A stretch of 64,000 nucleotides of DNA. It comes from Pocillopora damicornis. Its lineage: Eukaryota. A model generated the notes under the pieces. That model was not told the DNA's origin, ran no database searches, and saw only the letters and a program-made list of their open reading frames with translations. Positions 17,022 through 54,411 of the stretch are shown here, one piece after another (position 1 is the stretch's first letter; each line of letters opens with the position of its first letter). A program made the position numbers and the translations under genes. The DNA lies in the NCBI RefSeq assembly GCF_003704095.1, contig NW_020843386.1, forward strand, positions 1 through 64,000, written 5' to 3'.

Positions 17022-20000
17022 TCATAGCGATGATTTTCTTTCATCTTTCTCGTAAAATAGGATGTATGCTTGTGCTCCTTGCACCCGTGATGAAGAAATT
17101 TCATCCACCCTGAAAACAAAACAAATCTCTGTTAACCTTCACAGAAAGTTCAATATTATAAACACTTAAAGAAAAATCAGAAATTTTCCGATATTTCCGC
17201 AGGCGTTCGAAAATAATCGCGAAGTGACCAGTTTGTCGCAGGGAGGAAAAATTGTCATGATTCAGTAATTTTCAGTTCGAACTGTATCCTTTTACCGTAA
17301 ACTATTTTAGACTGACATGAAATGCTGAGGATTCTAGCACGTGGAATAGAGCACTTTTCAACTGATAATCGAAAGTGATCTTGAATTGCATTAGTTATGA
17401 AAACAGAGCAATCAGAATCAAGAAAAAATGTCACAAGTAGCCAATCGGACTTCAGGGTCCACACAGGCAAACTGCCTGAAGCGCGGGAAAATACGAGTGG
17501 CCAGGCGCGCTTGGTTCTGGGTTTGTTTTCTGATTGGTTGAGAGGATGGCACGAGTTTCCTGAACCAATCACAGAACGTGACGAGGCAATACCAAAAAAA
17601 AAACTTGAATCACTGTTCGCACTCAACGAAAATTTGGGCCGAAATTTTCGGGGATAGCTGGCCCCAAAAGGCGCTTTCAATTTTGGCAACTGTTTTCTTC
17701 ATTATCAGAAAATTCTGATCTTATGTTGATGCGCAAATGAGACTTAAGCGTATCCACTTCACGTAGAAAGCAAAACTCACCGTGAATCGTTAAAGCAGTG
17801 CCACTGTTTGCTGATCGGGTGTTTACAGTAAGCCATGTAATGGCCGCCGTAGGTGCTGCCGGAATGATTCGAGACTGCGTACAAGGAGTACACCGCTGAC
17901 CGACCCTCTGAAAGCAATCAAACAATCATACCAAATGGCATCCTTGCGAGGCAACTTAAGTTAATATTTTACAAACATCTCTGTAGAATTTGCGACATGA
18001 TATTAAACTTCATTCTTCTTAGAAACTCCAAAAACAAATAGAAAACATGCAGGGATGTTTGAGTATCAAAACCCCTTCTTCTCTTTTCTGTGTTCTCTAC
18101 TAGAGCTTCTTGCAGTTTTCATTCATTGAGCTACTTACAGCTAATTTGCGAGTTAGTCTTTCAATTTAAGAATTGCCTAAAAATGCGTGACATAGCGTGA
18201 CTCTAGTCCCCTTCAAACTTGTTTTGTCTTGTCACGCAACACTTTTTTCCCCGGAAGCTCTTTGAGACAACAAGAGATTGAACGTCGACAAAACCACGAC
18301 AAACTTGTCAAAAGGGTTTTTGACTTCAAAACTGGTTTTCATTTAACAGCCAAATGAGCAGCAAATGTTGTCGAACTGTGCAAATACGGACTCGTAGACA
18401 TAAGCATCTTTTAGAAAGTTCATAAATTTATGGCTAAAACTGACAGCGCTTATTTAGCGTCCCAACAAGTTTTCGGTTTCTCGATGGCTGACGAACGTTC
18501 CAACAGAACGAAATACTCGTGAGGTTCTTACCTTGGCTGTCGGCAGCAAATTCAGAGAGATCCAGCTTAGATAAAGGGAATTCTACATTCGTCTGTAGCT
18601 TGGATCGAAAACTGAAACCTGAGAATCTTTTTAAATCTGTTTAAATGGACATTAAGGTCAAATCTCAAAATCAGAGACTGATTTCAAAAGAAATTGAAAT
18701 AAAATAATAATTAAAAAAAAAACGCTTACTTTAGACATATCTTTAACTAGATGCCCAGTTTGTTGGTAGTTAAATAAATATTAAACTAAAAAAAAAACGG
18801 TCATCAAACAAACAGCCGTTAGGTTGCTCTCTAGCGGGTTCATTGGAACCTATTTTTAGGACACTTTTAGGGACACAAACTTGGGTCCCAACTCCTCTAG
18901 CAGTACTTAATCACCTTCATTGAAGGGACACCTCTATACAGGGGACTCTTTTTCATTTCCCCCAAGAGAGCCCCCTAAACTGAGGTTCCATCGTACACAA
19001 AAACAAGACATATTGACAGAGAAAGGATACGAAGAACAAGGACTGGCGGAAATCTTTGTATTGAGAATTTCTTCGTTGATTTCCTCTTGGCCTTACACTT
19101 GTCGCAAGTCTGAGAGAGAAAAACGTATATTAAATGGCTGGAGATCGGAATTTAACTTGTGTATTATGATCAAGTATGGGTAATTGCGAAGAACAACTCC
19201 CTGAAATAAAAGGCAGTCTATGACTGCATGTACCTGCTGCTGCATTGTTTTAGAGTATAAGAGTAAAAAAGCAATGTGTTGTAAAATGGTTTAATGAACA
19301 GCTGTTGTCGATGGCAAAATTGTGACAAACGGAGGACTTGGGCTGGAAATTACTAGAATAATCACATGAATTACTCGTGCATCAGATTAATTTTAATACA
19401 ATCGCCACTTCGTACGCTCTGCGTACCTAGCAAAATGGATATACCAACTCCACTCGAATACGAAGGTAGAAGGTTCGAGCCTCATGTCTAGGAAAATCAT
19501 CAGGGAGTTTTAGATCCACGTTTGTTTCTGACTACGTGTGACCGCAAACGTCTAGGAGTCACGTGACCAGACTCTAGCGGTCACGTGCGCCGTTTGCCGT
19601 CCACGTTAGAACTTCGGGCAAGGCAGTTTCAGGAAGTTGAACTCCCCTGACGCTTTTTCTCTTCTTGTTCGAAAGTTCTCACGCATGTCCTATAATATGT
19701 GAATTGAAGTCTTTTCTTCATAACCTATCCGTTTGGGACATTAGAAAACCAATCTTTTCGCCACATTTTGTGATTGAAATGAAGGACCCCCATCCTTTGT
19801 GTGATTCAAGATGGCAGCGCTCATGTTGATTTTTTTTTCAGGTGACAGCCGACTTCGATCTAAAAAGCTGAAAGTCACGAAACCTCTAACTTCTAACCAC
19901 AAACTGCTGACCGCTGTTTGACGTTTGCGGTGAACACACCAAACGTGGATCTTAAACTCTGTCTTAATAACTATCTTCCCGCACATAAAAGAACAAACCT

Positions 20001-23000
20001 GGAAAATGGCAAGTAAAACTGAACCATAATCATTTGGGTCGCCATAATTAAGGCAACTTATTTCCTTGGAAATTACAGACAATTTTGTTTCGTACTTACT
20101 GGTCTTTCGTCGCCATCCAATACTTCCTCCTTGGTGAAGGTAAGGATACAGTCTCTAATGGTAATCTCGCTGTCATTTGCCCCACTGGATCGCCTTCCGG
20201 ACCACGATGAAGATGATAATGATGAATGGCGGGATTTCTGAAGAGAACAATACGAAATAGTCCTGTCATGGTCGCAACAATAAGAGTTTTATCTGCTGTT
20301 CTCTTCCTCAGCTAGCGTGATAGAGTAGAGTCAACGTTTTACCATTGACGACTTTACGTTTTCATAACCTGGTACCCGTTTCTCGAAAGTCCCCGTAACT
20401 TAACGGGCCCGTGACCATATTTTAACATCAAAATTTGAACGATAAACAAGCGATAACCAATCGTTTTATTTCTAAGGCTGAAAGCTTTTTTGTATGCTTT
20501 TTAAAACCTTTGAAACCCTGCATGGAATGAAAATCACAACAGCTTTACAGGCCCGTCAAGTTATCGGAACCTTCGAGAAACGGAACCCAGATTCCTAAAT
20601 AAACAACAAACACAAGAGTGATATACAAAATGAATAAATTAGGAACATAAAACTTTTATATGGCTTATTTCTTCATTGCTTATTTTCGTGACGAATAAAC
20701 ATGAAAAACACGGAACTGTTTACACTAAATTCGCGGCATGTCACTGATAGAGGTCCTCAGACGGAGTATTTTAATAGTATGGAGTATTTAATTTCGGCAT
20801 ACAACAGATAGCCCTCAAAAATTTGAAGCAAATCAGATCTGGAAGCATTAGCTTAGATATCAGTTTCCTTTATTGAACGTTTTTTGGTAAGAAAAATTGT
20901 ATGTAAAGTAATAATATGCATGTTTTTTAAAGTTTGACTTATCACAGCCAAAGAGAACTAAATATTGTTTGCTGCTAACTCTTCGTCCTAAGTACTACAT
21001 CTATCCGATTTAAGACAATTCCATTTACTAAATAGAATTGTGGCAGAGGTTCCCTAGCAGATCGACGACACTTAAGACCGCTAAGTTCTGTTTTTTTTTT
21101 CGGTTGTTACTGCTTCTTCTTTGAATCAGCTGGGCGACTTACCCTTGGTATGGGAAGTGACAAGTCCCAGAACGGGTCAAAGGTGACTGACGTGTAATCA
21201 CAATGACAACATTTCAACATGCTTTTCAACTGTCCCACGAAAAGATCTGAAACAAGAACAGCAATGAATACTTCAAACCAATCTCATGCTCCAGAACATT
21301 TTTTCTTCGTCCTGTAAATAGCAAAAATGGCATTCCTAACGATTACTAACATTTCTTGCACTGAAATTGGTTGTTTAATCTTCGTGAGACTTCAGTTTTA
21401 GAATGCAACCGTGGGTTACAAGTCTTGAATATATCTTAAAAAATACGCAACGAGGATATTTCACAAGCGCTGCAAAGTTAATATTGTTAGTGACAACTTG
21501 TCTCTTATTCTACTCAGGAGTTTCAAATTCACTAATTTTATTTTACAGGAAGAAAGCTGATATTCATTTCAAAGTAAGAGAGAACAAAAAAGGTCTTGTA
21601 CCCTTTACAAAAAAACGTCCATTTACAGGGTAATTCTATATTTAATCCGCATCGAAACAAAAAGTTGCAACTTTTAAAGCGCGCACGAACAAATCGCAAC
21701 TAAAATTATGGGCCGTCAGCATGTGCATTGCAATGTTTCCAAAGAAATAACCTCATCTGACCCACCAGTCATCCAGCTGTCATCTCGTGAAAGATAACTT
21801 TTCCATGACTTCTCTGCATTCTGTCGATGACTAAAAAACCAATTGAGAGAAAAGTAAGAAGTAATACCCACACTGTAAAAAACCATTTGCGAAATGAGGC
21901 TTTTTCGTATAAAATAACCTTATTAAATACACCACAACAGTTAACTAAAATAAAAACTCCAAACCTTCTTAAAATTCAAATCAAAGGGTAACAAATTTGC
22001 GCTGACGAAAGCTCAAAAAACAACCAACTAAACTAAGTTAAAACAAACAGCAAAAGAACTCGGAAAATGTGTACGTCAGTTTTCTATGCCAAGGTCAGAG
22101 TTCTTAGACGTAATTGGCTAATTTGTGAAATCACGCGCGCCGCGCATGGATACAACAAAAGAGTACAAAGGGGGGAGAGGAAGAGGAAACTTGTAATTTG
22201 AAATTTAAAAACGAAAAAGATTTCCCGCACACATTTCAGTTCAATTTACGAACAATTGCAAAACCTCCATCTCAAAAAAGATCTATAACACAAGGTTTGT
22301 AGAGATACCAGGTTGGCATTGATCAGTATGTATCTTCTCCATGCTGTTCTCGACACATTTCTTATGGCACTGACAAGGAGAATTTGTTGAACAATCGAGA
22401 GCTTCTTTAAATGGCGATAATATCCTTTACTCTGGTGACCTTAATGTGTGATTTGGGGGTGAGAGAAGGAGAAATTAGACACTGATCACTCTTAAAGTAC
22501 ACAAGGATGATTACCTGAGTGAGTCGTCAAATTCACAAGGGGTATACTTTGGCTTGGATTTGACTCGATTCAAGTCATCGTGAAGTCCTTCCAAAAGAAA
22601 GCGTAAAAATTCCTGTGCATCTTGTTGGCTAAATATATATAAAAAAAGTTGAATTAAAAAACTTAGAACGTCTTGTACATAATTTTACTTTTTGCAAACT
22701 GCTTTTAGACTGTGACACAAGATATTTAGTTATAATATGTATTCAGTAATGCTAATTTAAAATTGAATCCCAATTTGTTCTCATCTTAATTTAAAACATC
22801 AGCATCAACATGCTACAATTATTTTTTTTACCAGGTTTCTATTTCAGTGTTTGTAGAAGAATTTTTTTCTCTTCTTGATCACATTAAATTGCCTTCTCAT
22901 TTAATCTCTCTGTTTCAGTCATTCGTCTGTTTGTCAGTATGGAAGATAAGCATATAAAAAATGAAACAGATAGATGCCTTTCTTAATATATATAAATATA

Positions 23001-26000
23001 TATGCATGTATAGGAAAATAGTATTTATAATAACAATATTAATAATAACATTAACTTGTAATGAAATAAATTTCATTAAAATTGCAGATTCAAGCCTGTA
23101 CCTCCCACAAATCTGATGAATGGCTGATGCGCAAAACGTCAGCTTTGAAATTCTTTATGGTAGCTAATTTACGTTATCAACTCAGCTGCTAATACTAAAT
23201 TACCCTGTTATACTCTTCCACCGGCGCAGCACCACAGTTTCTTTAGAAACTTGCCCCTTTATTCTTCTCCCGCATAAAATTGGGCACTAATACTAACTGA
23301 ACTACGCAGACAGGCTTAATAGTGACAAAACAAATATTTGACTCACTTGTATCCCATAAATCGAGGGGCAAATCTTTGGATCTGAGTCTTAAAAGAATGC
23401 GGAGACACTGCATCAGTGTAACCATGCTTCCACATAGATTTGATTAGATCCGCAAAAGCTGTGTAAAAAATTGTTCAAACCAAGAGATTAAAGCCAAAAG
23501 CAACTTAAAATCATAGAATGGGGATGAGGAAATAATTTTAATTGCTAGGAAAATTGCCACTTAAATCATGGAAACTTGTAATAACTATCAAAATGCTTTC
23601 CACAATTTTTTCAAGCCAAAGCGACACTCTTACCAACAACAGGTACTCTCCAAAAGACAAATACAGCCAGATGGACATTTGTTGTAACATCACAAATTAT
23701 TTTAAGCAAACGTTCTCAAGCAGTCAAATGTTCATGATTTCAACATGATTGCTGAACACAGGTTTCCAAATTGAAAACTTTTGCTGCATTGGAAGTGACC
23801 AAGACAGAATTTCTCTTAACAATATCAATAAAATACACAGCTGATTATTGGTTGATCTGATACCAAATTCTCCAAGCTATCATGATGAGAATTGTATTGC
23901 AGAAGGTAAAGAGAATTAGGAATGAGATCTTGAGAGTGAAAGAGTTAACAAAATTACACACAGCTATGATATAATAACATTGCTGTTGCATACACTATGT
24001 GATAAAAACCAATATCATAGTTGATAATCCATCAAATATTTTTGCTTGTGCACCATTGGTCAAAACACATCTCATGACCTAATATTCCCCTCCTAAAACT
24101 GGGGGTCCTATCCAAAGATATCACTTAACTGATATTCCCCAATTTTCAAACCTTAAGTCACTGCAATAAGTTGTTTTGTGGTTGTTACAGAAGAGGGGAA
24201 ATATTTGTTTTTTTATAAATTTGTACCAGAGAACACTCAAACAAGCTTATGCAGCAAACAGTGAGCTGTTCGTAAACAATTTTTCAAGTGCATTGCAAAA
24301 TATTTGAAGGAAAATCAACACATTGTCTCTATTTTGCTTGAACACATGCTTGTAAGTTTGTCTTTGGACATTATCTGTTCCTCAAAGCACACAGTTTTCC
24401 TCCAGTTTTGCTTTTGGAAAACTGTTTGCATCTTGGAACAGATTATGTCTGTGGACAAATATCCTTGCAAATCTTTGCATCAAATAAAGGCTATTGTTTA
24501 TTTATAATAATGTCAATGGATATACCATGAATAAGCTTGCCCTTCATGGAACTGTTGCTGTTAATTATCTTCAGGTGAGAGCCTTTTGACAGTTGTTCAG
24601 TTAAGGGTTGTGTGTGACTCAAACATTGGAGGATGGAATTCATAAAACACTGCAGAAAAAGTGCACAAAATCATAAGTTGCCTTGACAAAGTTTCTCTGA
24701 GAATGTCAAAAAGTATGAAAGATTTCAATTATTTAGGATATCTGATACTGGTTGAGATCAGTTAGGTCATATCATTTCTAAAAAAATATACTTACTGTAT
24801 TTCCTAGGTTACGCAGACCAACTAACCCATCAGAACTGCCTCTTCCTGTAGGCTAAAAGATAAAACAGACATGTTTAACAGTTCCTTTCAGCAATTCATT
24901 ACACAAGAACTTCAATAATTCAAATCTGTACATAACAGAAGCTGCTAAACATTAGATAAATTCAAAATCAGAGGTTGGCAATATGCAGTGCAGAATAAAA
25001 TCAGGAGTAAAAGCATACGTTTTTCCTTGAGGACAGATTTCTTTTCACCAACAGGACCCAAAACAAACAGAAATAAACTCCCACTGTAAAAAGATATTCA
25101 CATCCAAAAGCCACGGTTTATCCCTCTCCTTGCTGATGATTCAATTTCTCATCAAAACAAGCAAATAACATAATTACAACCTCTTCTGGCAGAATGTGTT
25201 TTGCCACAAGATACATTAGAAATTTGCTCTGACAGTGAAATTAGAAAATCTGTCCTGACTCCAAAAATTACATCTAAACAGGAGAAATGGGTTTAAAAAG
25301 AAAAAAAAACCAGATAGCATTGCCATGAAAATGGAAACTTGAGTATAACAGGTATATTATTGCCAAACCTGGCAAAGTTCCATTCAAAATGAATGTAGTC
25401 ATAGGTATAAATTATATAAATAAATTAGTCATGTTTGACAGGTATTTTAATTAAACAATGTCAAAACAACTCATTCCTAAGCAGAAACATACCATGTTGA
25501 AGGCGTAAAAGAGAAAAATGGACATTCTAAACGATTTCAAAATTAGATTTATGAAAAAAAGGAAAAAAAAAGAAAAGAATTCTAGGAAGCAGATTTCAAT
25601 CCAAAAAAAAAGATGAGACAAATCGATAAATAATTAAGCATTGAAGACACTGTTTGTCTGAGTAACAAACCGTAGGTTGTTTGAAAACAATTTTTTTTGC
25701 AGTAAATTCTTTTTTTTTCCTATGGAAGCTTTAAAAATTCCAAACTAGCTTGAACAAATTTTTTTTTATCGAAATCATATACTTCAAAAAGGTCAGACTG
25801 AATCTAAATTATTTGCAGTAATCTTATCCATGACCATGACATAAAATTTCTTTGAAATTAAGTGATAACTTTAAGAAAATTTAATGTTTGATAAAAATTA
25901 AAACTCTGAAGCAAATATAATTTCTACAGTCTCATCATGTGTCTATTTTGCAATTTATCAATATGTTACAGAGAAGTAATGTCCACATAACTTCAAGCCT

Positions 26001-27333: not shown

Positions 27334-27438
27334 TTGTACATCAATGGGATAACGAATCGCCTCTAGCAAAACCTATTACCAGGTTGATTTTTTATCGTAC
27401 AAAACAGTCATTAATCGAATAGTAAACCGTTTGTCTTC

Positions 27439-27460
27439 GCCGCCATGTTGATCACGTGAC
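27439..27460 (-). promoter_or_regulatory. Putative USP2-like core promoter (E-box plus YY1-type motif)
   Basis: GTCACGTGAT directly followed by CAACATGGCGGC on the minus strand, about 110 bp upstream of the CDS. The motif ATG opens a 12-codon uORF. Confidence 0.5.
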
Positions 27461-28014
27461 GTAATTAACCTTGACAGTGCGTTTGTGATGTCATAGCAAC
27501 CAAACATAGGGGGAAAAAAACATCCTTCCAGGGTGGGCTGAGAAGTACTTTCTAGAATGTTGTGAAATAGGTTGTTGTTCATCGTGGTAGCTGGATGATA
27601 ATGTAAATTTGCTTTGTTGTCTCACGACTAAGTCATTAGATGCAGATCGCAACAGAGCAAATTTATATTATCACTTTCTAGAATGTATGACATAAGTTCG
27701 TGTGATAGGTCTGTTGCAATTGCAATCGCAATTATTCAAAATTCAAATATATCTGCTATTACTGTATTAGAAAATATTCCTTTATTACGGATAGGGAAAA
27801 ATTTCACCTTTTCATATCGTTGGAAGTTTTTTTCTCTACATTAAACAAGGAGCTCAGTAATGGGCTCCTGATGGAACTTAAAAATTCCCAAAAATTTAGA
27901 ATGTCATGGTATAAATGTATAAATTTAGAATATTGACATTAAGATAAATGGCGAAAAAATTAAGTGTGATCCACCTTGAAAAGAAGGGGAAAAGAAAACG
28001 ATTGTCCGTCCGCA

Positions 28015-29250: not shown

Positions 29251-29384
29251 TTAAGAACGAGGGAAGGTTAAAAATACACGTTACTACATCCTGCATCTCA
29301 ATCGAGAGACTTTGCATGCAGTTTTGCCTCTGAGTTATTAATGCGGCTGGCGCTTTGAGTTAAGTGATATTTTAGTGATTAAAA

Positions 29385-35773: not shown

Positions 35774-35870
35774 TTTTCTGAACTCCATTGAGAAAAGCAT
35801 CAATTAACCTTTCCACAACAAATTGTGTTTTAAAGGCAAATGTCATACACCCTGATCTGTGTTCAGAAAA
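35774..35870 (-). promoter_or_regulatory. Type II SECIS element in the SELENOS 3' UTR
   Basis: Minus strand: outer helix UUUUCUGAAC/GUUCAGAAAA (10 bp); core AUGAC (AUGA at 35843-35846) opposite UGAU (35799-35802); helix II AUUUGCCUUU/AAAGGUUAAU; unpaired AAAA; apical mini-helix CACAA/UUGUG closing UUUG. Confidence 0.9.
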
Positions 35871-36021
35871 GGAGATTCTTCAGCTGAGTTAAAATTTTTA
35901 AACTACACAACATGTCACTGCAACAAACAGGCTTCCAAGTTAATTTTTCTACAAAAATGAGTTGTGTCGTGGTCCAGAAAAAAAATCCCTTCCCCTTAAT
36001 TTAAATTTATCTACCAAATTT

Positions 36022-42525: not shown

Positions 42526-45500
42526 TCAGCCAGATTTCTTCCGACGCAAGTATTCAAACTCTTTGCTGGTTTTGAGACATTCTTCGGCCACCTCTGGCTC
42601 ATGTTGGGTTAAAATATGTCTTTTGAGATTTCCTCGCCGTTTTAACCTTTGCCCACAAATATCGCACTCAAATGGCTTCTCCTTTGAATGGGTTTTCACA
42701 TGATTCCATAATAAACTGTTATTCTTGAAAGCCTTCTTGCATTTGGGACATTTATATCGCGCAATATCAGAATGAGTTTTCTTATGGGTAGAAAGCGCAC
42801 TTGACCACGTAAACGTCTTGGCACAGATCTTACATGTATAAACCTTTTTTTCTTTCAAATTCCCAAGCTTATTGCGTGGCATATGAAGATGGTGAACATT
42901 TGTTTCGTGTTCCCTCAAACCGCGCCGACGACGAAACGTTTTGTCGCAATGACTACATTTACAAGGCTTTTCTCCAGTATGGATTCGCTCGTGATCTTTC
43001 ATGTTGTAGCTCCTGGCGAAAGCTTTATCGCAATATTGACAAACGAAGGGTTTCTTCCCGGTATGCACAATTTTGTGCTGATCAATATGGTGTCGCTGGC
43101 GGAAAGATTTGCCACATTCATCGCACTTGTACGGTCTTCGATCATAGTGAATATTCATGTGTTCCAAGTATGTCGTAGCTGATGCCAGCATTTTTCCACA
43201 TTCTTTGCACTCCAAAGATTTATTTTTCTTCTTTTTCTTGACGCCTGTGGATTTAAACAAATTGGAAATAGAGATTGCACACCATGACATCACACGAATC
43301 TAGAATAATTTACAAGATAGAAACATTACGCCCTACTCAGATAAGTGGTAGGTACGACTTATGGCGATTCTTCACCCTTTTACTACCAAGATCTTATCAG
43401 AAATCCTCTTTACTCTCTGTTATACAATTGTTATGATGTTAGCTACGAGAATTTGGTATTGGATCAACTAATAATCCTCTCATTTACATTTACTATTTCC
43501 TCATCACTTGTCTGCTTAATATTATTTTGATATACAATCGAACCTGTATTAAGCAGCACCGTACTCAGCGGTCACCGTGTGTATAGCAGTCAGCTGTAAA
43601 AGCCCCGAAATTGTTTCCCCTTGTAATTGTCACCTTTTTATAGGGGTCACCTCCATTAGGCGGTCCTGGTCACCATTTACTGAACCACTCACTCAATAAA
43701 GCTTAGGGTAAGCTTTCAACTATATTGAATTCACATCCATCTACCGACATCAATGCTAGTAGTATTTTTGAGCGAGTTTTGGTTCATTGAGTGGTCGATT
43801 ATAGCACAAAATGACGCTTTTTTTATCGTTTTTTACAACACCCCTATTCCGTGGAACCTGCATCAAGCCGTCAATCGCCATTCCCAGTGGGTGACTGCTT
43901 AATATACGTTCAACTGTATATTATAAGAAGAAACTCTGTCTTGGTCACCTATGAGAGTAAAAGGATTTAGGGATACTTGAAAAATATTCAGCAGAGAAAC
44001 TGGCTTAAACTATATCAATCTGAAAAGCATTTATGAAGAGTAACAGACCTATTCCTTAAAAAAAACTCTTCCATTCGGGCGGAAATTCCGAAACCCGATT
44101 GATCAGTTAGTTATACTCTACCATTCCTATACTACCAGTAAAAGGAACCGTACTGCAGTCCTTATCTTGTGACCAGCAAACGAATATATTATTATAAGTT
44201 ACCTGTTCCTTTCTGTCTCTCAATTTTCTTCATATTTTCACCGTTTTCTGTTGGTTGCAGGAGAGAGGGATGGACAACGACATCTATTTCATGAATGGAA
44301 GGAGTTGATTCATCACAGAGCAGCACATCAGCAGTAGTGTTGTCTGCTTCTAAAAGATGAAATTAAATGTTAAACTGAAATATGCCAAGCTTGGCCTTGC
44401 CAAGGAGACCTGAGTACAGGGCACTAAACAGCCTTTACTTGTAATAAAAGTAGCTGCTGTAAAAAAATGAAATTTTGTAAAATTGGTAAGCAGTGAAGGT
44501 TTTTTCCACAATTGAGATGTAGGGAAAAAGTTATGCTTTCAAACATTTTTGCCACAGACCTTCCTTCACAAGGTTCAGCAGCATATTTGTTCAAAAACAT
44601 ACTTTCATCCTTGAACAATTGTCAAACTTAAGCTGCAAGCTAATGTGTACTAGTTACATTACAAAAATACATTTTTCAAAGGTTGTAAAATAATAATGCC
44701 AGTTTGTGTGACAAGTAGTCCTTAGCTTTAATACAATGAGTCAAACCTGTATTTAGCAGTCACCCATGGGAAATGGAGGGGTGACAGCTTTATACAAGTT
44801 GCACAGATTATGGGTATTATAAAAAAAATAAAATAATAAAAAAATTCAACTTTATGCCATAATCGATCACTTAATGTAAATGATCTTGTTCAAAAATACA
44901 TCTTACTTTGAGTTTAGGAGAGAAACATGTATGGATTCAAAATTACATAAAAGATTACTCTTAGCTATATCTGAGTGGTTCTACCTCAGTGACCATTCAA
45001 TACAGGTGAAAAACAATAAAAACGGACCATTGGGACTTAGTAAAGGGTGACTGCGACCATTTAACAGAGGTGACTGCTTCTAAAAGATGTGAAAATTACA
45101 TTGATTAAGTGGGTAACAAGTTAGTTAAGGATGACTGCGACCATTTAACAGAGGTGACTGCTTTTAAAAGATGTGAAAATTACAGTGATTAAGAGGGAAA
45201 CAAGTTAGTTTAGGATGACTGCGACCATTTAACAGAGGTGACTGCTTCTAAAAGATGTGAAAATTACAGTGATTAAGTGGGTAACAAGTTAGTTAAGGAT
45301 GACTGCGACCATTTAACAGAGGTGACTGCTTTTAAAAGATGTGAAAATTACAGTGATTAAGAGGGAAACAAGTTAGTTTAGGATGACTGCGACCATTTAA
45401 CAGAGGTGACTGCTTCTAAAAGATGTGAAAATTACAGTGATTAAGTGGGTAACAAGTTAGTTAAGGATGACTGCGACCATTTAACAGAGGTGACTGCTTC

Positions 45501-47131
45501 TAAAAGATGTGAAAATTACATTGATTAAGGGGGAACAACTTCATGACTTTGACAATTGATACAGAGTGACCATCTCATACAGTGCCACTTAATACAGGTT
45601 TGACTGTAGATTGCTTCAGTTCAGTGGAAAGAGATTTGAGTAGATGGGGTATCACTTCTCACTTTTTTAAACATTTTTTTCATGTATATTATTGCCATGA
45701 ATTTGCAATCACGTTTGTGACATTGTGACATGTGAAGAAGTAAATCTGACTGTGATACTGGCCCCTTGAATAAATTTTGAGGCAAAAGGACAGTATGGTA
45801 GTCAGCAGGCTATGAAACACTCCCCCCCCCTCTTAGAAACTCTCTTGGAGAGGTAAAAATCCCCTTATGGGATTGGGGTGAGTGTCAGGTCAGACTAGCA
45901 AAAGAACACTTAAGGTAATAAACCAATGAATAAAGCTCTAACCTTTTGGTACAGTTTGAGAATTGTTGCCCCCTTTCTTGCGTTCTTCATCATTTTCTGT
46001 GTTCAATCCAACAACATCTAACTGATTGGCATTGTCACTTTGTGCTTCATTCAAACCATCCTGATCAGATGTCTTATCAGCATTCTGGTCACTTTGAACT
46101 TGGTTTGTGCTGCTGAATTCAGCAGTAGGAACTTCTTCTTGGAAAACTGTTCTTGTGGATATCTGTTCCACCTCATTCTCACAACTGGGCATCTCATCAG
46201 AATGAGGTTCTTCTATTTCAACACCACTGCTCTCTTTTTGAACAATTGAAACAATTTGCTCCTCAAGATCAGTTCCCTCATTTTCAACATCTGCAACTAC
46301 ACCATTTCCAGAGGATTTCTTTTTCAAAAAGTTCAAAAGAGCCAGTTTGGTAGAACTGGTTATCTGACCACACTGGCTTCTTTTAGCTTCAATGGTCTTG
46401 TGTTTGTTGTTAATTGCAAACGTTTTTGCCATTACTAGTTCTTGTTGCTGTCTCTTGTTGGAAATGTCCTCTTCACAAATAATGGTCTTGTGGTTATTGT
46501 TATTTGGGCCAGTTTTAACCACGTCTGGTATTCCTAACTGTCTCTTTTTGGAAATTTTCTCTCTGCAAACATCTTTCCTTGGAATTTGGAAGTTTAAAGG
46601 TCTTGGTATCATTACACCATTTGACAAGTTCATAGTAGCTGTTGATGGCCTGTGGCCTCTACTTGAAGTTGCTTGTGGAAGTGAATTAGATGTTGATGAA
46701 TGCAGCACATTCATGACTGAAGTTTCTTTTGATTTTGAAATTGATGTCTGAGGTGGATTTACAGTTGATGGTTGTTCTGCATCAAAAATTGATGTTTGTA
46801 TTAAATTTGATTCTTGAGATTTTCTCCCAGCCGAAAATCGTTTAATTTTTCCAACAACATTGCTTGATATTGTTTGGTGTGTAACATTACCATTACTTGA
46901 GAATCCAGATTCCTCTTTTGGTGATTTCTCAGCGGTTATGTATGAATTATTCTCTGTCAGAGATGAACAAAAGGCCACCTGGTTACGCTGGTTACCAGTT
47001 CCTTGTACTCGGTTTCCGTTGTCATCCTCAATAAGCACTTCTGGGTCAGTTTCGGCAAACTCGAAGATGAAGCTGATGGTACTGGAAGGTGAGTTGATGA
47101 CTGAAATTGCACCCTGATCCTCTATTTCCAT
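42526..47131 (-). CDS. C2H2 zinc-finger protein with 7 C-terminal fingers and a long low-complexity N-terminus, about 684 aa
   Basis: Exons (minus): 45943-47131, 44203-44349, 42526-43244, with two phase-1 introns and 2055 nt. Seven CxxC..H...H fingers with TGKKP/TGEKP linkers, preceded by KKKKKNK. The start was taken as the first ATG (MEIEDQG); the ORF track start is a TTG. Confidence 0.85.
43372..43968. mobile_element. piggyBac-type MITE interrupted by a TA-flanked TIR element (43535-43916)
   Basis: Host halves 43372-43532 and 43919-43968; insert ends TA-caatcgaacctgtattaagc...gcttaatatacgttcaactg-TA. Confidence 0.7.
44739..45608. mobile_element. TIR element (Tc1/mariner-like MITE) carrying an internal 84-bp tandem array
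   Basis: agtcaaacctgtattta...ttaatacaggtttgactgta; same TIR family as 43535-43916. Confidence 0.65.
45047..45540 (+). repeat. 84-bp minisatellite, about 6 copies, with alternating A/B variants (168-bp higher-order unit)
   Basis: tgactgcgacc at 45048, 45132, 45216, 45300, 45384 and 45468. A variant gcttcta/gtgggtaac, B variant gctttta/gagggaaac. Confidence 0.92.
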
Positions 47132-48267
47132 AATAATTTGATTCTTATATTGGTCATCACCCTTCAGCAAGTAAATCAATGCGTTGAAAGTAATCCTGCG
47201 TTGTTGAAGGAACAAAATTGCTAGTCAAATTGTACACGTGTTATACTAAAACGAAGCATATACGTCGACAATTCAAAGAAATGTATTTCTAGTTACCAAA
47301 TTGCACGGCGTAAAAGTGAGTCAACAATCCATAAAATCTAGCCAATATTTAACTTGGTGATTACTGCAAAAAGTTCGATTCATGTGTTCATTTTAGCAAC
47401 GGATCTTGCCCAGTAAGGTTTGACAGAAACTGAAATGAGTCTCTGATAATACGACCGACAATTCCTTCCATTTTAGACGTGAGCGAAATTCTTTGTACAA
47501 CAAATTTAAGAACTGTAGTGTATCGAGAACAAATTAATATTATTTTAAACAAAATATTATTACCTATCTTTTCCGATATGACTGTAAACAATATAAACTC
47601 GAGATCACGGCAAGTGAAGTGTTATTACGCCATTTTATTCAACTCGTTTCCATGAGCAGAGAGTTGACTGGTAACGACCTTTTTCAAGCGTGACATTCAC
47701 GCGTGACTTTATTTACGCTAAAAAAGTTGAAATAAACAAATAACGAAATCAAAAAGGCGTTGATCTATGCGATTTTTAGAATGTTCGATTCACATGAATT
47801 AAACTTGCTGATGATGCTTTTTGCGTATTAAAATCTGAGCTGAGGAATATTGTCGTATTAGCTCTTCATGCTTACTTACTTCTTCTATGAACGAGGAAAA
47901 AATTATCTCAGCCATGGCAGTCATGGTGTGACTTATGGAAAAACGGAAAACCACAACCAAACGAAAAATTTGAATAAAAGAGCCATTGGGTAAAGCTAAT
48001 AGAACAGAATAAAATACCGAATCCCCGAGGACATTCACTTAAACGGAAATTCACGATGTTGTGATCAGGGTCCTGACGCAGTAAATGCGAATGTACTGTA
48101 TCAATAATTGGACTTTGCCTCGATGTTGGGCAGACAAACTGGGCTATGATAACTTGCTGAAACTGTTCGCAAAGATCCACCAAATTACGCCCCATTCTGC
48201 TAAAGGCGAAAAAAACGAACAAATAGACCGAAGAAGATGATATCTGTTGTCGAACGTAGTCACGGTC

Positions 48268-48330
48268 GGGATTCCTTTTTATAGGAGCGTGCAGTCATCA
48301 TCGGGGAAACCCCCTCACCTCGGCCCAATC
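48268..48330 (+). promoter_or_regulatory. kappaB site and CCAAT box upstream of the second IkappaB-family gene
   Basis: GGGGAAACCCC 48303-48313, a weaker GGGATTCC 48268-48275 and CCAAT near 48325, about 200 bp upstream of the ATG. Confidence 0.6.
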
Positions 48331-48511
48331 AAGACGAACAACCAAGTATTTGCATCACAAGGTTTGCCCGATTGCATGTGCTTGGCTCGGATCTTCGTGA
48401 ATTAATGAAAACATGTTTTTCCAGTTTTGTAGCAAGAATTTAAGAAGAATCTTTGGCTAAAGCTTGAAATGCTGGTCTGGAGAATTCAAGGGATATTTTA
48501 CACGAGATCTC

Positions 48512-51500
48512 ATGTCTGGTAAGTTGAGTTTTATGTCAAGCACTGCATGCAATCAAATTCGCAGTGTTTGCTTTCTCAGGGTGCACGTCATCAAAACCTC
48601 GCACATATTTACAAGATTATGACTAGAAAGTGTTAAAATATTTCGATACTTTCAGGAGAAAGTCGAAAGCGTCGGCATGGATCTGCAACAACGGGGAAAG
48701 AATGTGTTGGGTTGGATCCATTAGATGAAGAGCGCCGTTCTACTGTTGAGAACAAACCACCCTCTGTGCTGGCTTGCGTGACAGACCCAATCGAAGGAGA
48801 TTCGGGGCTCGACAAATCTTCGTCCCTATCGGACGACCTTCACGGTAAACAAGGAAGTAAAGCTAATTCGAAGAAAGAGGCCACTGAACATGATGAGGCA
48901 GACATCGTGGATGTAAAAGCATCTTCTTCCTCAAAAGTTGTATCAGGTTTGTCCACGTTAGGAGAGGTCGCGGATCCATCACCCTCAAATACCAACGTAA
49001 CTACACCTCATACCTTAGTGCAATCAAACGACTGTGTACGGACTGTAGCGGAAACATCACCCATGCCTGATCTCTTTGCACAAGATGACGATGGAGATAC
49101 GTAAGTTGAGAATATGTATTTATTCATTTCATTTTTCTTCACTCAGCTGTTACAGCTCCTCGTGAAACAGTATTGCAGATAGACGCTCTTCCTCGTAGGA
49201 GATAAGTCTGGAAGGGCCATCTCGGAAATAAATACCATGTAAAATCATTTAGACATTCCTCTTCAATTCCAGACATTCGAATGTGTATGTATTTCAATTT
49301 GGTGTACGTCCTAAAGAGCATATTATCTCGCCGACCAGTGACATAACATATCAATGTTTTGATATGAGGCGATCTTTGATATTCAGTTTGAAATGTTCGA
49401 AATTAAACCATCAAAAACTCTGCACGAAATTCCTACTGATGGCAAGTCATTGATGACATGATGATGACATGCCAGTGACCTTAGCAAATTGATCATAGTC
49501 TAAACATTTATAGTCCACGACGTGAATATGGACTCCAAATGATTAAGAATATTTAAAGCGAAAATGCTTACGTCGGCACATTCTACATTATTTGACTGAA
49601 TTATGTAAACGTTCATGCGGAGAAGTCACGAAGGAGAAAATGATTGTGACTCCTAAACCAACGATCCGAGCGAGAAAGAGCGGTACGCGAACAAAACAAA
49701 AACTCCAGCATTTAAGTACTAACTGCTTGGACCGAAAAAGGTAGCAGCGACACATACCTCGAACAAAAATTATCATTTAATTTTTTTTTATTTTAATTCA
49801 AGCTGAGGGAAGTTTAAGAATAGCGTGTTAGCCCCACACTGAGGAAGACGTCTTGGAAGTAATCGAAGGACGTACTCAAACAAAACACATTTTATTGGTT
49901 TCCATTGATCTGTTTTGGTTTCTAGAAGACAAAGTTGATTGGTTACCATAAGGAAATTCCTCTCGACACTTCATGGAATGCACAAAAAACATGATTGCGG
50001 TAAAAAAAAAGTCAAATTTTTGCGATACAGATATGTATATATCTATATTTAACAAGCCTTTGGTTGAGTGATTTTACGGACAGGAAGACTTCACTCGGTA
50101 AACCATGCAAATCTACGTGATGAATGTAAAAGGTTCGAAAGAGGCTAAATAGATCTCAGTTTCTAACACTGAAGACTATAAAGAATGCTTCACAAAGCGA
50201 TGGAATGAAAAACAATTATTTATCACAATTTTTCTGGAATCGTTTTGGCTGCCGACCTCTTATATTTTGAAATATAAGAGAGAGCAAAAATTTAGATTCT
50301 TTCTTGTCGGTCTTACCCTCAATTTCGTTCTGCTCTCAAGGTGAACAGACATGCGGAAGTCGAATCGCATATTTTTCATCGTTCGAACTCAGGTTCTCAT
50401 TATCACTCACTGACCTTGTCGTAAGAGAGAGTTTAGGTTAAAGAAATTTCCCTTTTTCTTCACAGGTTCCTACATATTTCTGTGGTACAGGGTGACCAAC
50501 CACTGAGTCAGTTTTTCATTGAGAAAATGAAGTCAAGAGGGGTTGATATTTTCAACAAGCTTAGACAAGTACGTAACTTTTCGATTAAAGGAAAAGAAAA
50601 AACTGTAGATTATCTGTCAAGAGTGTAAAGCAAAGAAGGGAAGCGGGTACAATGATTTCATTTGGCGACAAAGATATAAATGTCCAGGATTATGTTTATT
50701 CCTTTTCATCCTCATTAATTGTTAGCAACTTTTGTTGCCGATAGCAGCGGCGTTCGTGACACGTGTTACATGTAAACCTAAGATAAATTTGTAATATTGA
50801 CTGACTATGAGGTCGATATGGCTTGATATTCACCGACCTCTTTAACAAGCTGATGAGAGAGCAAGGCCATATCAAGCCAATTCGACCGAACTTGGTCAAT
50901 ACACCGTATTTCACGTGGCTGCAAAATCGTCTTCGAGTAAACGAAGAGAACGAGTCACGGCGAGAGATATTTTCAACCCAAGAAGATGAAGTAACATCTA
51001 CAGAAGGAAATTTGATGTCCCCGCGATCGCTCGCAGAAAGAGATGCTCACGGCCAAAGACTTTCAACTACAGCACGGTAACTCATCAATAACCTTTGTTT
51101 TTCAGACACCGTTACATCTTGCTGTGATTACTCATCAAAAATATCTTGTGGAAAAGCTGGTAGAGGGCGGAGCGGATGTTAATTTGATGGACAGGCACGG
51201 ACAGACCGCCCTTCACTTGGCCTGTCAAAATGGTGACATCCATTCTGTCCTAGCTATTCGTGACGTCACACATAGATGCCACATGCAAATAAGACTGGAT
51301 CTGAAAAATTTCCAAGGTGAGCACATTACGACAGTACCACGAGGAGCCGCGGTTGATTGAAGTTCATGATCTACGGAGCCACTACTTTACTTTCAGCTGA
51401 TTCGTTGCCGGTTGATGTCTGGTGACCCCAAGTTTATGGTGAACCTAACTCTAAGCTGTTGCATTTCAGCCATGGATTGGATCAGACGTATTGTTCGGCA

Positions 51501-54411
51501 GGCATTGCACCACCCTCATGGGAGCCTGGCCGTTCACCTTAAATATTAAAAAAAAAACTAGCTGATTCATTTTAATGGAGGGCTAACACTCGAATGGTCA
51601 GCTGCAGAATCTCTCTTCGGTAGCCAATTCACTTAAACCGGGGAGCCGCAAGTGGGAGTTTTTCCTATTACGGTAAAAAATCTCTCGCGGCATCACCTCT
51701 TGTTTTCAAAGCTTTGCTACTTGATGCCTCAACACACTCACAAATCAGACAGCGACGCAGGTTCAAGGTGCAACTGAAATTGTGGTGTTTGCCAGAATGT
51801 CACGTTTTGGTCGAAGTCGTTTTATTGGACTTCTAATGATGGTTGGACTATATTATCTGGAACATCATATTTTTGAGTAATGCACAAGCCTGGGGCCGTT
51901 GTTTCAGTAGTGGCACCTGCTAATCCTGGATTAGACGCTAAATTCAATTGATTTTGATTAGTCTTGTTGATAAAAGCTTCGGTTGGGGTTAACGGTTTGT
52001 GGGGGCAAGCGTGCTGTCATGAAAAACTGAAGAGAGCAACATCTAAAAAAATTGAAACTAACCTTGGGATAATCTTGAGTTAACTTTAACGTGATTTGAC
52101 CAAACCAGCAAAGGTCTATTTTTGAAGAAGTAATGCTGGCCTTTTACTTTTGCAGGATTTTCAGTGCTTCATGTGGCGACTTTGAATGGAAATAAACAGC
52201 TTGTTGAAACAATTCTTGACATGGGAGCAGACATTAACGATCAGGTTATTTACCAATTCGTAACTCACTTCTTAATTCGTAGTTTCTAAGAACAAGAGAC
52301 GATGAGGTAAGGAGACTGAAAGCTTCTATGTTGTCTTCCCATTGTGCGCCGGTCGCTCTTGAGTTATTTTTAGAACATGTCCTAAGATTTTCTAAGATTT
52401 GCAAGACAAACAGTTGGTTTGATTTTATTGTAGTCTAGAATTCGATCGGCTTTGCTCTACGACGCTCTGTGATTTTTGCAATCAGTTGCAAAGCTTAGAC
52501 AAATCGCGACTTGATCACCCCTGTTTTCTCGCTCTTCAGACAATTAAGGTCATTCTCCTCAAATAGAACCCCTTCACCCCTCGAGATTTCCGTGAAATAT
52601 TACATATTGGTTGTTTATCTTGCAGGGACGTAAATTTTAAAATAAAAAATGGGATCCCTGTGCTCGTCTAAGAGCAGCAGTGCCCTTTAGATAAACATAT
52701 AACTACTGAAATCATTAAAAAATTTACAATTTTCTTGATTGTGATTGGTTTTAAAAATTATATTTTCCACTAATTTACATGTCAATTTGTTATTGGACGG
52801 TCTGTCATCGGACGATTCAATGGGCCAATAACTTTCAAGGTTGTAATTTATATCAACCAATCACATTCATTTTGATTGCAGTCAATGTCAGAGCAACGTT
52901 AAATAATTAACGCCTCCTTAGTCAGTCTTTTAATGCAAATTAAGAAAAAGAAGCAAATGATAGGTAATTGTGCTTGTCTACCAGAAATTGTCTACCTCTG
53001 TGATAAACTCCGACCACGAAGAAAAACCCCCCATTTTTTTATGTGCGTGCGCTAGTTAACAATGAAATTATGCAAAGTTAGGATGCACAATGCAATAAGG
53101 CGGAATAGACCTGATTTGTCTTTTTTAGCTTTCATCGGCTTCATAGTGGTTGAGATTAACGTTAAGTTTTAACATGAAAGGAAGTAAAACAGTAACGTCG
53201 CTCAGACGAAGGATCAAAGCTCTAAACGTCAGCCTTTAAACTCTTTACGGTGGCCAATTTACGTTATCAGCTCAGTTCATAACACTAAATTACCCTGTTA
53301 AACAGTAACACTTGATAACTGATAACTCTTAACATTTCTCAGGATTCCAACAGTGGTCGTACAGCTTTGCATCACGCAGTGGAGGCTGGGAAAAATCATG
53401 TGGTAGAGTACTTGATAACACGTGGTGCTGACGTCAACAAAGTTACGTTCGCTGGAAACACTCCGCTTCACACGGCTAGCGGTCGGGACATGGATCAGAT
53501 GGTGAAACTTCTTATTCAACACGGTGCCAACGTAAACATTGCTAACCTAGAGGGTGATATTCCGAAAGTGGGACAAACAAGTGAACAGGTAGGGGTTCCT
53601 CATTTCTTTTTAAACCCTGATTTAAAGTCTTTAAGTTTCATGGGCGCCTCGCACTTCCCACACTGAGCAGTGCCTCCCCCCCCGTCTCTCGAGTTGGACG
53701 TGATATGTCCTTAAAAGTTTTATAGCGGAGCTTGAAGCGCGCGCAGCGAAGCCCCATACTTATCAAGAATGGTATTCTTGCGTCAAATGTTGGTTAGTTG
53801 ACAGGAAAATTTTAACCAAACTGCCTCTGCCATAATATTGAAAGCCAGTGCCGGGAGCTTTTCATGAAATTAGGAGTGTTTTTAAAAGAGCACGCCTTTG
53901 GGTTAAACGGATGGAGAAATTTAGACTAAATTTCTCAAGTATGTCTATTGCACTCGGTGCCAGTCTTCTCCATCCCTTACTGTAGTTAGTTTTGAGAACT
54001 TTTCAAGTAAGTATCAAAAACCTGAAAACCAAAGTATTCACAATGGCGAATCAGAGCAAAGGTAGACATCGTTATCAGCCAATGAGAACTCATAATAAAA
54101 AACAAGCAAACTGCTTGAAGCGCAGGTAAAGCGCAGGTGACCAAATCGCGACTGGTTTTCAGTTTCGCATCTGATTGGTTGAGGGGATGGTGCGAGTTTT
54201 CTGGACCAATGACAGAGCGAAGTAATACAGCAGCGGCGGATTGAGGGAGGCTTGGGTCGAGTCGTTACGCGCCCTTTCTCGAGGTTTTACTTCAATTAAA
54301 GAGAGTTTTGATATAGAATCTTCAGTGACAATGTTGTCATCTTGTTTTTATTATCAGGCGAAGAGACATTTCCGATCCAAAGAAAAACAAACCAAAAGGA
54401 GAAAAAAATGA
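48512..54411 (+). CDS. IkappaB-family (IkappaB/Bcl-3-like) ankyrin-repeat protein, about 384 aa, 7 exons
   Basis: Exons 48512-48518, 48656-49100, 50466-50568, 51106-51316, 52156-52244, 53343-53588, 54358-54411 (1155 nt, in frame). Ankyrin motifs QDDDGDTFLHISVVQG..DIFNKLRQTPLHLAVIT..DRHGQTALHLAC..KNFQGFSVLHVA..SGRTALHHAVE..GNTPLHTASGR. DSGLDKS at 48799-48819; basic RKRRH at the N-terminus and KRRKK at the C-terminus. Confidence 0.88.
53995..54228 (+). repeat. Dispersed repeat (other copies near 15175-15450, 17465-17600, 36815-37097 and 52430-52545 inverted)
   Basis: Shared aaactgc.tgaagcgc...tctgattggttgag.ggatgg..cgagtttt.tggaccaat.acagagc. Confidence 0.7.

Follow-up and report, generated by a model that had tools for sequence, protein, structure and literature searches.

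A probable old collinear coral block with two IkB-family genes as predicted NF-kB targets beside USP2-like and selenoprotein S genes

Results

Overview of the locus

In the window, that is, the whole stretch of 64,000 nucleotides of Pocillopora damicornis DNA that was analysed, four genes are found at the places predicted in the earlier note: a USP2-like deubiquitinase (-), a Bcl-3-like gene (+, gene B), selenoprotein S (SelS, -) and a second IkB-family paralog (+, gene D or paralog 2). It is quite likely, judging from motifs, gene models and gene order, that they belong to an old collinear coral block in which both IkB-family genes are predicted direct targets of NF-kB, with the USP2-like gene and SelS standing next to them by retained microsynteny. 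The coordinates of all features are collected in Table 1.

Table 1. Features of the locus, in window positions.
Feature	Position	Strand	Remarks
USP2-like deubiquitinase gene, predicted model	17022..27333	-	PF00443 UCH matches on several exons; exon edges approximate
USP2-like stop codon	17022-17024	-	
USP2-like catalytic exons, part 2	20076-20288, 18978-19151, 18437-18640, 17780-17917, 17025-17138	-	17780-17917 holds the His box GGHY...FND
USP2-like catalytic exons, part 1	near 24494-24670, 23346-23474, 22514-22684, 21719-21919, 21110-21283	-	24494-24670 holds the Cys box
USP2-like first coding exon	26437-27333	-	start MSLTMQ at 27333
USP2-like / Bcl-3-like head-to-head intergenic region	27334..29384		two kappaB sites
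kappaB sites upstream of Bcl-3 ATG	29053-29062, 29205-29214		GGGATTTTCC, GGGAAGTCCC
Bcl-3 ortholog, gene B	29385..33676	+	443 aa; 5 coding exons
Gene B CDS exons	29385-29865, 31020-31182, 32001-32391, 32741-32953, 33593-33676	+	
Intron-1 kappaB cluster, Bcl-3-like	30453..30769		30453, 30509, 30561, 30717/30718, 30760
Assembly gap	34836..35044		convergent 3' intergenic or UTR space, Bcl-3-like / SelS
Selenoprotein S gene	36608..41399	-	PF06936 on four exons, in profile order
SelS exons	ATG 41399; exon 1 to ~41283; near 40786-40917, 39229-39378, 38740-38853, 37780-37844; last 36608-36633	-	
C2H2 zinc-finger ORF, single exon	42526..43293	-	Pfam zf-C2H2, E = 7e-35; between SelS and paralog 2
Orphan ORF, 425 aa, single-copy	45938..47215	-	between SelS and paralog 2
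Paralog 2 proximal promoter	48304..48355		kappaB 48304-48314 (GGGGAAACCCC); octamer ATTTGCAT 48348-48355
Second IkB-family paralog, gene D	48512..54411	+	384 aa
Gene D CDS exons	48512-48518, 48656-49100, 50466-50568, 51106-51316, 52156-52244, 53343-53588, 54358-54411	+	
7TM GPCR	56506-57441	-	downstream neighbour, block 56506..59991
MRPL17	59767-59991	-	downstream neighbour, block 56506..59991

The arrangement described in the earlier note was recovered. The two IkB-family genes lie on the same strand about 19 kb apart, their start codons being separated by 19,127 bp, and the Bcl-3-like gene is head-to-head with the USP2-like deubiquitinase (2,052 bp between the ATGs) and tail-to-tail with SelS (2.9 kb from stop to stop). 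The assembly gap falls between both 3' ends and is crossed by no coding frame; its flanks are collinear with the orthologous locus L001 (861 nt here vs 693 nt in L001), and Bcl-3 exon 4 and SelS exon 4 are separated by 4.76 kb here and by 4.5-5.4 kb in L001-L004. The zinc-finger ORF gave no tblastn match in the sequence fetched for L005 and L006, which includes the complete 2-kb SelS-to-paralog-2 interval of L006, and is therefore placed outside the conserved core. The orphan ORF is without Pfam domain and was undetected in the orthologous interval of L006.

Identity of the four genes

The predicted gene model of the deubiquitinase has the features of a USP2-type protease (peptidase C19), since the Cys box (CFMNS), the His box (GGHY) and the catalytic Asn (FND) are all read in its predicted translations and its closest similarity is to USP2. 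USP2 was the best PDB match for one exon with 55.6 bits vs 34.3 for USP21, and for another with 39 bits vs 34.5 for USP4, and the start MSLTMQ is kept in L001, L002 and L004. As predicted from this model, the enzyme is catalytically intact. The last SelS exon ends GGA-TGA-GGT-TAA, with the predicted selenocysteine codon TGA at 36614-36616 in penultimate position before Gly-stop. No SECIS element was found by Rfam at SelS; the candidate is a conserved 3' block at 35695-35995.

Gene B is 98.6% identical, without gaps over 443 aa, to the transcript-derived sequence P0089, and has Ank Pfam matches and an NLS-like basic stretch, SPSKRKKSETKKPRP, in its N-terminal part. P0089 scored best against human Bcl-3 (177.7 bits, chain residues 1-213), followed by p100 (134) and IkBa (130), the latter two also as single collinear stretches, while IkBb and IkBz match part of the domain only; an IkB-type ankyrin domain is thus indicated by full-length alignment to solved IkB ankyrin domains. 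In the tree, gene B groups with Nematostella Bcl-3 and with proteins of Actinia and octocorals (support 97/92*), a clade that forms an open fork with bilaterian Bcl-3. The Nematostella member is NvBcl3 (Wolenski 2011, as cited in PMC3630861 and PMC5700166). On this similarity and tree placement, gene B is the coral ortholog of Bcl-3.

Gene D, whose limits coincide exactly with those given in the earlier note, is 96-97% identical to the transcript-derived sequences P0116-P0122, and all six of its introns (6/6) are GT..AG and appear as joints in the RNA contigs of 4 runs, each from a different one of 4 studies; splicing can be read from these contigs and levels cannot. It has Ank Pfam matches and six ankyrin repeats aligning along IkB domains, which places it in the IkB family in the broad sense. 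The gene D-type sequence P0120 scored 159 bits against Bcl-3 (residues 149-370), 136 against IkBa and 128 against p100, each in a single collinear stretch.

Age and affinities of the second paralog

Paralog 2 lies outside the well-supported clade of cnidarian Bcl-3 proteins, in which octocoral sequences are included (97/92*). As placed by the tree, the split between the paralogs is older than the hexacoral-octocoral divergence, and the check proposed earlier thus gave paralogs that are not recent lineage-specific duplicates.

It had also been proposed that the pair preserves an ancestral split, i.e. that it is the relic of a tandem duplication that separated a nuclear Bcl-3 from a cytoplasmic classical IkB before the divergence of cnidarians and bilaterians. 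Such an origin appears fairly unlikely. It is in line with the common strand, the 19-kb spacing, the introns that genes B and D share in position and phase, one at DGD-T|xLH and one ahead of the fifth ankyrin repeat, and the weak grouping (80/89) of paralog 2, outside the Bcl-3 clade, with an IkB-beta and the p105-like group. Against it, a tree joining the cnidarian Bcl-3 and paralog-2 clades was not rejected (AU p = 0.124), and Bcl-3 is the closest human ankyrin domain to paralog 2; classical IkBs were almost absent from the reference set. Atlas features do not separate the two either; the nearest Atlas clusters of P0120 are IkB-epsilon and IkB-beta at 0.97-0.98. A DSGxxS phospho-degron is not conserved: DSGLDKS occurs in the window and P0120 only, and the orthologs have DSELDK or DRKPWK at this position. 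The C-terminus is basic, AKRHFRSKEKQTKRRKK, instead of an acidic PEST region, and is nearly unchanged in four orthologs with an invariant terminal KRRKK; the basic, NLS-like N- and C-terminal tails are both kept across orthologs. Of the earlier proposal, the old age of the split is supported; a cytoplasmic IkB identity of paralog 2 and, by the AU test, a pre-bilaterian age are not.

A third IkB-like gene is found unlinked on contig C4019, which also weighs against the duplication relic; its Oculina ortholog is named p105-like by NCBI. Nv-IkB is described as closest to the C-terminal ankyrin domains of NF-kB (PMC5700166), so its likely coral counterpart may be the C4019 gene and not paralog 2. 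Paralog 2 would then belong to a less-studied IkB lineage. Its assignment as a classical cytoplasmic IkB is not supported, given the unconserved DSG, the retained basic tails, the third unlinked gene and the proximity to Bcl-3.

Conservation of gene order

The linkage, for which the earlier note had proposed a microsynteny check, holds across stony-coral-type assemblies. The order USP<->Bcl-3-><-SelS is kept in L001-L004. Gene D shares the contig of these genes and the strand of Bcl-3 and was found 19 kb and 37 kb downstream, and the full order USP2<->Bcl-3-><-SelS...->IkB2 is found on both sides of the stony-coral gene tree including Montipora, the depth of conservation for the ENA assemblies resting on that gene tree.

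This order could be read as the mark of a four-gene NF-kB and stress module, with linkage kept by selection because the genes would have kappaB enhancers in common and be served by two divergent promoters (USP2<->Bcl-3 and SelS<->paralog 2), whereby feedback inhibitors would be co-induced with genes that handle ubiquitin and ER stress. Several facts fit such a module: in mammals, USP2 and USP21 act on the ubiquitination of TRAF/RIP1, and SELENOS can be induced by cytokines; the USP-Bcl-3 divergent region holds kappaB sites; SelS and paralog 2 stand head-to-head about 2 kb apart in L006; and the adjacency of SelS and Bcl-3 alone survives in a distant anthozoan despite rearrangement. The module is nevertheless unlikely. 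Downstream, the GPCR and MRPL17 (60% and 75% identical to their positional counterparts in L005) are equally collinear, so that the linkage is not conserved beyond that of unrelated flanking genes; because the collinear block extends to them, a module cannot be recognised from the kept order by itself. SelS and paralog 2 have two extra ORFs between them here and are about 21 kb apart in another coral, L007/L008 have neither USP nor paralog 2 near Bcl-3, and L009/L010 hold the D-like gene alone. Furthermore, no strict kappaB site was found at the SelS start in the window or in L008, and no regulatory elements common to all four genes were found, kappaB sites being located at Bcl-3 (shared with USP) and at paralog 2. 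Of the co-regulated immune/stress module claimed before, what remains is therefore the kappaB sites at both IkB genes and their kept linkage; SelS, without a site, and the equally collinear GPCR and MRPL17 stand against the rest. The USP2-like gene may be co-regulated with Bcl-3 through the divergent region between them, which is 0.6-2.3 kb long in L001-L004.

kappaB sites at both IkB-family genes

The pattern GGGRNNYYCC has 23 matches in the window vs 3.86 expected. The claim that kappaB-type sites lie near both IkB starts was borne out at the Bcl-3 upstream pair, in intron 1 and in the paralog 2 promoter, with enrichment and with positions conserved across species. Among five orthologous loci, 19/26 kappaB sites fall in the equivalent 12.6% of sequence (p = 2e-12). 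L001, L002 and L004 also have a site pair ahead of the Bcl-3 ATG, at a distance of 160-330 bp, L007 has kappaB sites ~155-260 bp upstream of this ATG, and L001 has matching intron-1 sites at near-identical spacing; the USP-Bcl-3 intergenic region of L003 is without a strict kappaB site. Site pairs 20-50 nt apart occur at ~25 distinct places in the 234-Mb genome, 3 of them in the intron-1 cluster. At paralog 2 the sole strict site near the start lies ~200 bp upstream of it, in a proximal promoter ~45-55 bp upstream of the inferred RNA-contig 5' end, and this site and the octamer align among three species (window, L005 and L006).

That these motifs are non-functional by-products of base composition, and the genes ordinary neighbours, is very improbable, for although the motif is short and degenerate and a reversed control pattern is commoner genome-wide than the true paired pattern, 7 sites are found in a 2.1-kb segment (28885-31020) that covers the start of Bcl-3 and its intron 1 vs 0.13 expected under the local composition model, a number reached in 0/2000 simulations, and five other loci, with introns that have otherwise diverged, show the sites again in position and spacing.

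Discussion

Vertebrate BCL3 and NFKBIA are NF-kB-induced feedback genes with kappaB sites in promoters or intronic enhancers. The coral locus is similar in its clustered kappaB sites at IkB-family genes, the main cluster of the Bcl-3 ortholog being intronic, and different in that 19 kb separate the two linked genes, which have USP2-like and SelS genes as neighbours; the human counterparts of these genes are on different chromosomes. Metazoan microsynteny blocks and divergent gene pairs likewise keep order and orientation for long, with short head-to-head intergenic regions. Here, on the other hand, conservation extends beyond functionally related genes, and since it is not restricted to these, regulatory constraint is not demonstrated by it.

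In sea anemones, NvBcl3 and NvIkB inhibit Nematostella NF-kB reporters (PMC3630861), and the site specificity of NF-kB from Aiptasia is the usual one (PMC5700166). In Aiptasia, BCL3 responds to heat and starvation and has been predicted to be a target of NF-kB, a prediction also made for Nematostella (10.1101/2023.07.30.551141; 10.64898/2026.05.19.726363; PMC13042239). As here, Aiptasia BCL3 has several kappaB sites near its start (10.1101/2023.07.30.551141; 10.64898/2026.05.19.726363), and the two 'BCL3 homologs' reported in Aiptasia fit the two paralogs of this locus; unlike the present analysis, the Aiptasia studies report no gene order, intronic clusters or cross-species site conservation.

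Because their NF-kB binding sites are conserved, both IkB-family genes are probably feedback targets of NF-kB, which would bind the Bcl-3 promoter pair and the intron-1 cluster as well as the paralog 2 site beside the octamer. This binding would induce both genes, and their ankyrin domains would in turn attach to NF-kB dimers and so modulate or damp NF-kB output; the feedback step is drawn from the conserved motifs together with what is known of Bcl-3 and IkB in vertebrates and sea anemones. The USP2-like and SelS neighbours would then represent retained microsynteny inside the larger collinear block.

Beyond this block with its two predicted NF-kB targets, a wider proposal, distinctly unlikely at present, is that each IkB paralog keeps a divergent proteostasis partner (the USP2-like gene for Bcl-3 and the ERAD selenoprotein SelS for paralog 2), with conserved kappaB enhancers driving both pairs. 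If this were true, NF-kB activation in corals would switch on NF-kB's own nuclear modulators together with ubiquitin- and ER-stress genes as one unit, an arrangement that would predate the anthozoan radiation.

Gene models of the locus

The window covers the first 64 kb of contig C21 in a genome assembly of 234.35 Mb and 4,393 contigs, and its features are collected in the table together with two related features found elsewhere in the genome. Exons were searched singly, joined exons were used locally for translation, BLAST against fetched proteins and trees, and whole-protein searches were carried out with two transcript-derived database proteins, P0089 and P0120, standing in for gene B (the Bcl-3 ortholog) and gene D (the second IkB-family gene) respectively. 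RNA evidence consisted of contigs, the locus-bearing runs being labelled coral or marine metagenome.

Positions of the features in the window and of two related features on other contigs of the assembly (G000)
Feature	Position	Strand	Description
USP2-like deubiquitinase	start MSLTMQ at 27333, stop 17022-17024	minus	several exons match Pfam UCH
Gene B	29385-33676	plus	five coding exons, 443 aa; 98.6% identical to P0089, ungapped
Assembly gap (N run)	34836-35044		between gene B stop (33676) and SelS stop (36608)
SelS	ATG 41399, stop 36608	minus	four exons match PF06936 in profile order
C2H2 zinc-finger ORF	42526-43293	minus	single-exon, about six fingers
425-aa ORF	45938-47215	minus	single-copy, without Pfam domain
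Gene D	ATG 48512 to stop ending 54411	plus	384 aa; six GT..AG joints in RNA contigs
Third IkB-family gene	G000:C4019:197071-199562		ortholog of Oculina NF-kB p105 subunit-like, 62-86% identity per exon
NF-kB Rel homology domain	C998:730183-731681		

Among solved structures, USP2 was the top relative on two exons of the deubiquitinase gene: on one it scored 55.6 bits and USP21 34.3, on the other 39 bits and USP4 34.5. Its translation contains the Cys box (CFMNS), the His box (GGHY) and the catalytic Asn (FND), and its start is kept in three other loci, with stop codons upstream of it. The last exon of SelS ends in GGA TGA GGT TAA, implying a penultimate Sec. Non-coding sequence located 3' of the SelS stop (35695-35995) matches two orthologous USP2-like/Bcl-3/SelS loci, L001 at 72% identity in a stretch of 312 nt and L004 at 88% in one of 57 nt, and this conserved block is a candidate SECIS region, though an Rfam search reported no SECIS and no other RNA family.

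The splice evidence for gene D came from RNA contigs of four runs from four studies, after which the model was refined; its ATG and stop are exactly those given by the earlier note, and the protein is 96-97% identical to 388-aa proteins derived from transcripts. In one RNA run, exon 2 carries 12 additional in-frame nucleotides (4 aa) at position 48960; this insertion may account for the greater length of these database orthologs compared with the window model and is probably an allele or sister-species difference. Two stretches in gene D introns (53077-53275 and 54072-54270) displayed a very high RNA-contig depth with many loose ends, a pattern that resembles pieces of a dispersed repeat transcribed at other loci.

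The assembly gap lies between two stop codons and so occupies the 3' intergenic or UTR space of two convergent genes, where no reading frame crosses it. Its flanks have the same order and orientation as in L001, with the nearest aligned blocks 861 nt apart here and 693 nt in L001, and exon 4 of Bcl-3 and exon 4 of SelS are separated by 4.76 kb, compared with 4.5-5.4 kb in four other loci. These collinear flanks and similar spacing are consistent with continuity across the gap, and the idea of a hidden gene or a misjoin was rejected on these grounds; no part of the finding rests on this interval. At the start of the window, seventeen assembly gaps are found in positions 1-15600, where G+C is only 19-33% over much of the stretch.

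Identity and age of the IkB-family paralogs

The ankyrin domains of genes B and D are of the IkB type and align lengthwise with solved IkB domains. In PDB searches, P0089 scored 177.7 bits with Bcl-3, 130 with IkBa, 134 with p100 and 106 with IkBb, the corresponding scores of P0120 being 159, 136, 128 and 107 bits; such full-length database orthologs performed better than single ankyrin exons, for which the results were dominated by DARPins and giant ankyrins. ESM Atlas features placed both paralogs among IkBs, the Bcl-3 type and the classical type not being separated.

A maximum-likelihood tree was built from 40 proteins, a reference set from which classical IkBs are nearly absent, and in it gene B grouped with Nematostella Bcl-3, an Actinia Bcl-3-like protein and two octocoral proteins (97/92). 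Gene D formed its own clade (100/99) outside that of gene B, weakly joined (80/89) to turtle IkB-beta and a group containing the Oculina p105-like protein. Two intron positions are common to both genes in the same phase, and the proteins share 45% identity over their whole length and 52% in the best-conserved exon. Genes B and D are thus old paralogs that split before the hexacoral-octocoral divergence, and not the recent lineage-specific duplicates that would have refuted the reading of the earlier note. A tree joining the two clades as sisters survives the AU test (p = 0.124), so that a pre-bilaterian origin of the split is no more than possible. The idea that the pair preserves an ancestral separation of cytoplasmic IkB from nuclear Bcl-3 is a less likely reading, and the cytoplasmic label of gene D is tentative: its DSGLDKS motif is not kept among orthologs, while its basic tails are, with an invariant N-terminal GExRKRRxGS core and a nearly unchanged C-terminal AKRHFRSKEKQTKRRKK ending in an invariant KRRKK.

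The third IkB-family gene, on contig C4019, is linked neither to the window nor to the Rel homology domain of NF-kB (C998). Since Nv-IkB is described as closest in sequence to NF-kB C-termini (PMC5700166), its coral counterpart is likelier to be this gene than gene D. Corals have no fewer than three genes of the IkB family, as the locus also shows. On the same contig as the third gene, roughly 130 kb away, a tandem array (G000:C4019:67435-67570) is made of units of about 42 bp, each with GGGGATTTCCC, a perfect kappaB-type site, and is among the genome's few multi-site clusters.

KappaB-type sites at the starts of genes B and D

The motif GGGRNNYYCC occurs 23 times in the window, where 3.86 occurrences would be expected, and none of 100 shuffles reached the observed count. 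The stretch that begins 500 bp upstream of the gene B ATG and ends with intron 1 holds seven distinct sites (29053, 29205 and the others within 30453-30769); 0.13 are expected there under a local first-order model (0 of 2000 simulations gave seven), and site density in it is 43 times that found elsewhere in the window. A site pair located 160-330 bp upstream of the Bcl-3 ATG is found in L001, L002 and L004, and in the more distant locus L007 the upstream sites lie at about 155-260 bp. All five orthologous loci have sites in intron 1, with a spacing in L001 nearly equal to that of the window; when the five loci were pooled, 19 of 26 sites fell within the equivalent 12.6% of the sequence (p = 2e-12). 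Genome-wide, two sites 20-50 nt apart occur in only about 25 distinct places, three of them in gene B intron 1 and the other multi-hit places mostly in tandem repeats. The seven sites around the gene B start form one of the densest non-repeat kappaB clusters in the genome.

A single kappaB site, at 48304, precedes the gene D ATG by about 200 bp and the inferred 5' end of the RNA contigs by roughly 50 bp. An invariant octamer, ATTTGCAT, is aligned with it in three species, 34-50 bp downstream of the site (window 48348-48355; positions 3113 in L005 and 4443 in L006, two loci with a gene D ortholog). Sites near both IkB-gene starts, as first noticed in the sequence, are thus borne out, enriched at gene B and single at gene D, with positions that recur across loci. 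Near the SelS start, no strict kappaB site was found in the window or in L008, another distant locus.

Conservation of gene order

Neighbour order was read from exon-level ORFs in ENA assemblies, among them ERZ25067556, ERZ25073751, ERZ25071792, ERZ25071797, ERZ25072724 and ERZ25067893. USP (minus), Bcl-3 (plus) and SelS (minus) have the same order and orientation in four assemblies as in the window, with 0.6-2.3 kb between USP and Bcl-3, and in two of the four the gene D ortholog follows downstream at 19 kb and 37 kb, with contig and strand unchanged. In three further assemblies, the Bcl-3 and gene D orthologs are on contigs identical in size. SelS and gene D stand head-to-head in L006 with about 2 kb between them. 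In a gene tree, L001 groups with the window, whereas L002 and L004 fall on the Montipora side; L003 is sister to these two groups and L007 branches outside the clade, implying that the four-gene order spans both main branches of the clade. Outside it, the linkage is reduced: in the distant taxon of L007 and L008, SelS is upstream of Bcl-3 on the same strand, with neither USP nor gene D found within reach, and L009 and L010 have a gene-D-like gene alone. A DDE_1 transposase ORF (L008 4233-4964) lies directly upstream of SelS in the distant anthozoan locus that has SelS and Bcl-3 in tandem.

As a control, the GPCR and MRPL17 genes downstream of gene D were found to be collinear in L005 too; consequently, conserved order is a property of a larger block and not of the four NF-kB-related genes alone. 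MRPL17-like stretches occur at 59767-59991 and 63361-63498, only the first being close (75%) to L17 at the matching place in L005. Neither the zinc-finger nor the 425-aa ORF was detected in the orthologous loci that were fetched, among them the whole SelS-to-gene-D interval of L006, and both were rejected as members of a conserved core on this basis.

Discussion

Models of how corals control immunity, symbiosis and bleaching currently give NF-kB a central place, and to our knowledge its direct targets in corals are predicted only. The analysis establishes the genes described here, their arrangement, the enriched and conserved motif and the conserved order. A probable feedback is inferred, whereby NF-kB would bind the kappaB sites at genes B and D and induce both, and the resulting IkB-family proteins would in turn modulate NF-kB. 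This reading matches predictions of BCL3 as an NF-kB target in Aiptasia and Nematostella, reports of a rise of BCL3 with heat and starvation (10.1101/2023.07.30.551141; 10.64898/2026.05.19.726363; PMC13042239), and the reported inhibition of NF-kB reporters by cnidarian Bcl-3 and IkB (PMC3630861).

Of the co-regulated module inferred in the earlier note, the supported part is the two IkB-family genes with their sites. The USP2-like gene could plausibly be co-regulated via the divergent region between it and Bcl-3; SelS has no supporting element in the sequence, and the collinearity of GPCR and MRPL17 also weakens the case for a four-gene unit. Nothing usable came from a literature search on USP2/TRAF6 and on kappaB sites in the SEPS1 promoter. 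Each gene belongs to a known family as an ordinary member, and Bcl-3 had already been proposed as a cnidarian NF-kB target; in the literature searched, no description was found of the conserved intronic kappaB cluster of Bcl-3, its linkage with a second IkB-family lineage or the recurrent adjacency of SelS.

Taken together, the coral Bcl-3 ortholog and the little-studied second IkB paralog at this locus both bear concrete, conserved and testable kappaB elements, and the conserved linkage of the locus yields a defined hypothesis of co-regulation with a deubiquitinase and SelS.
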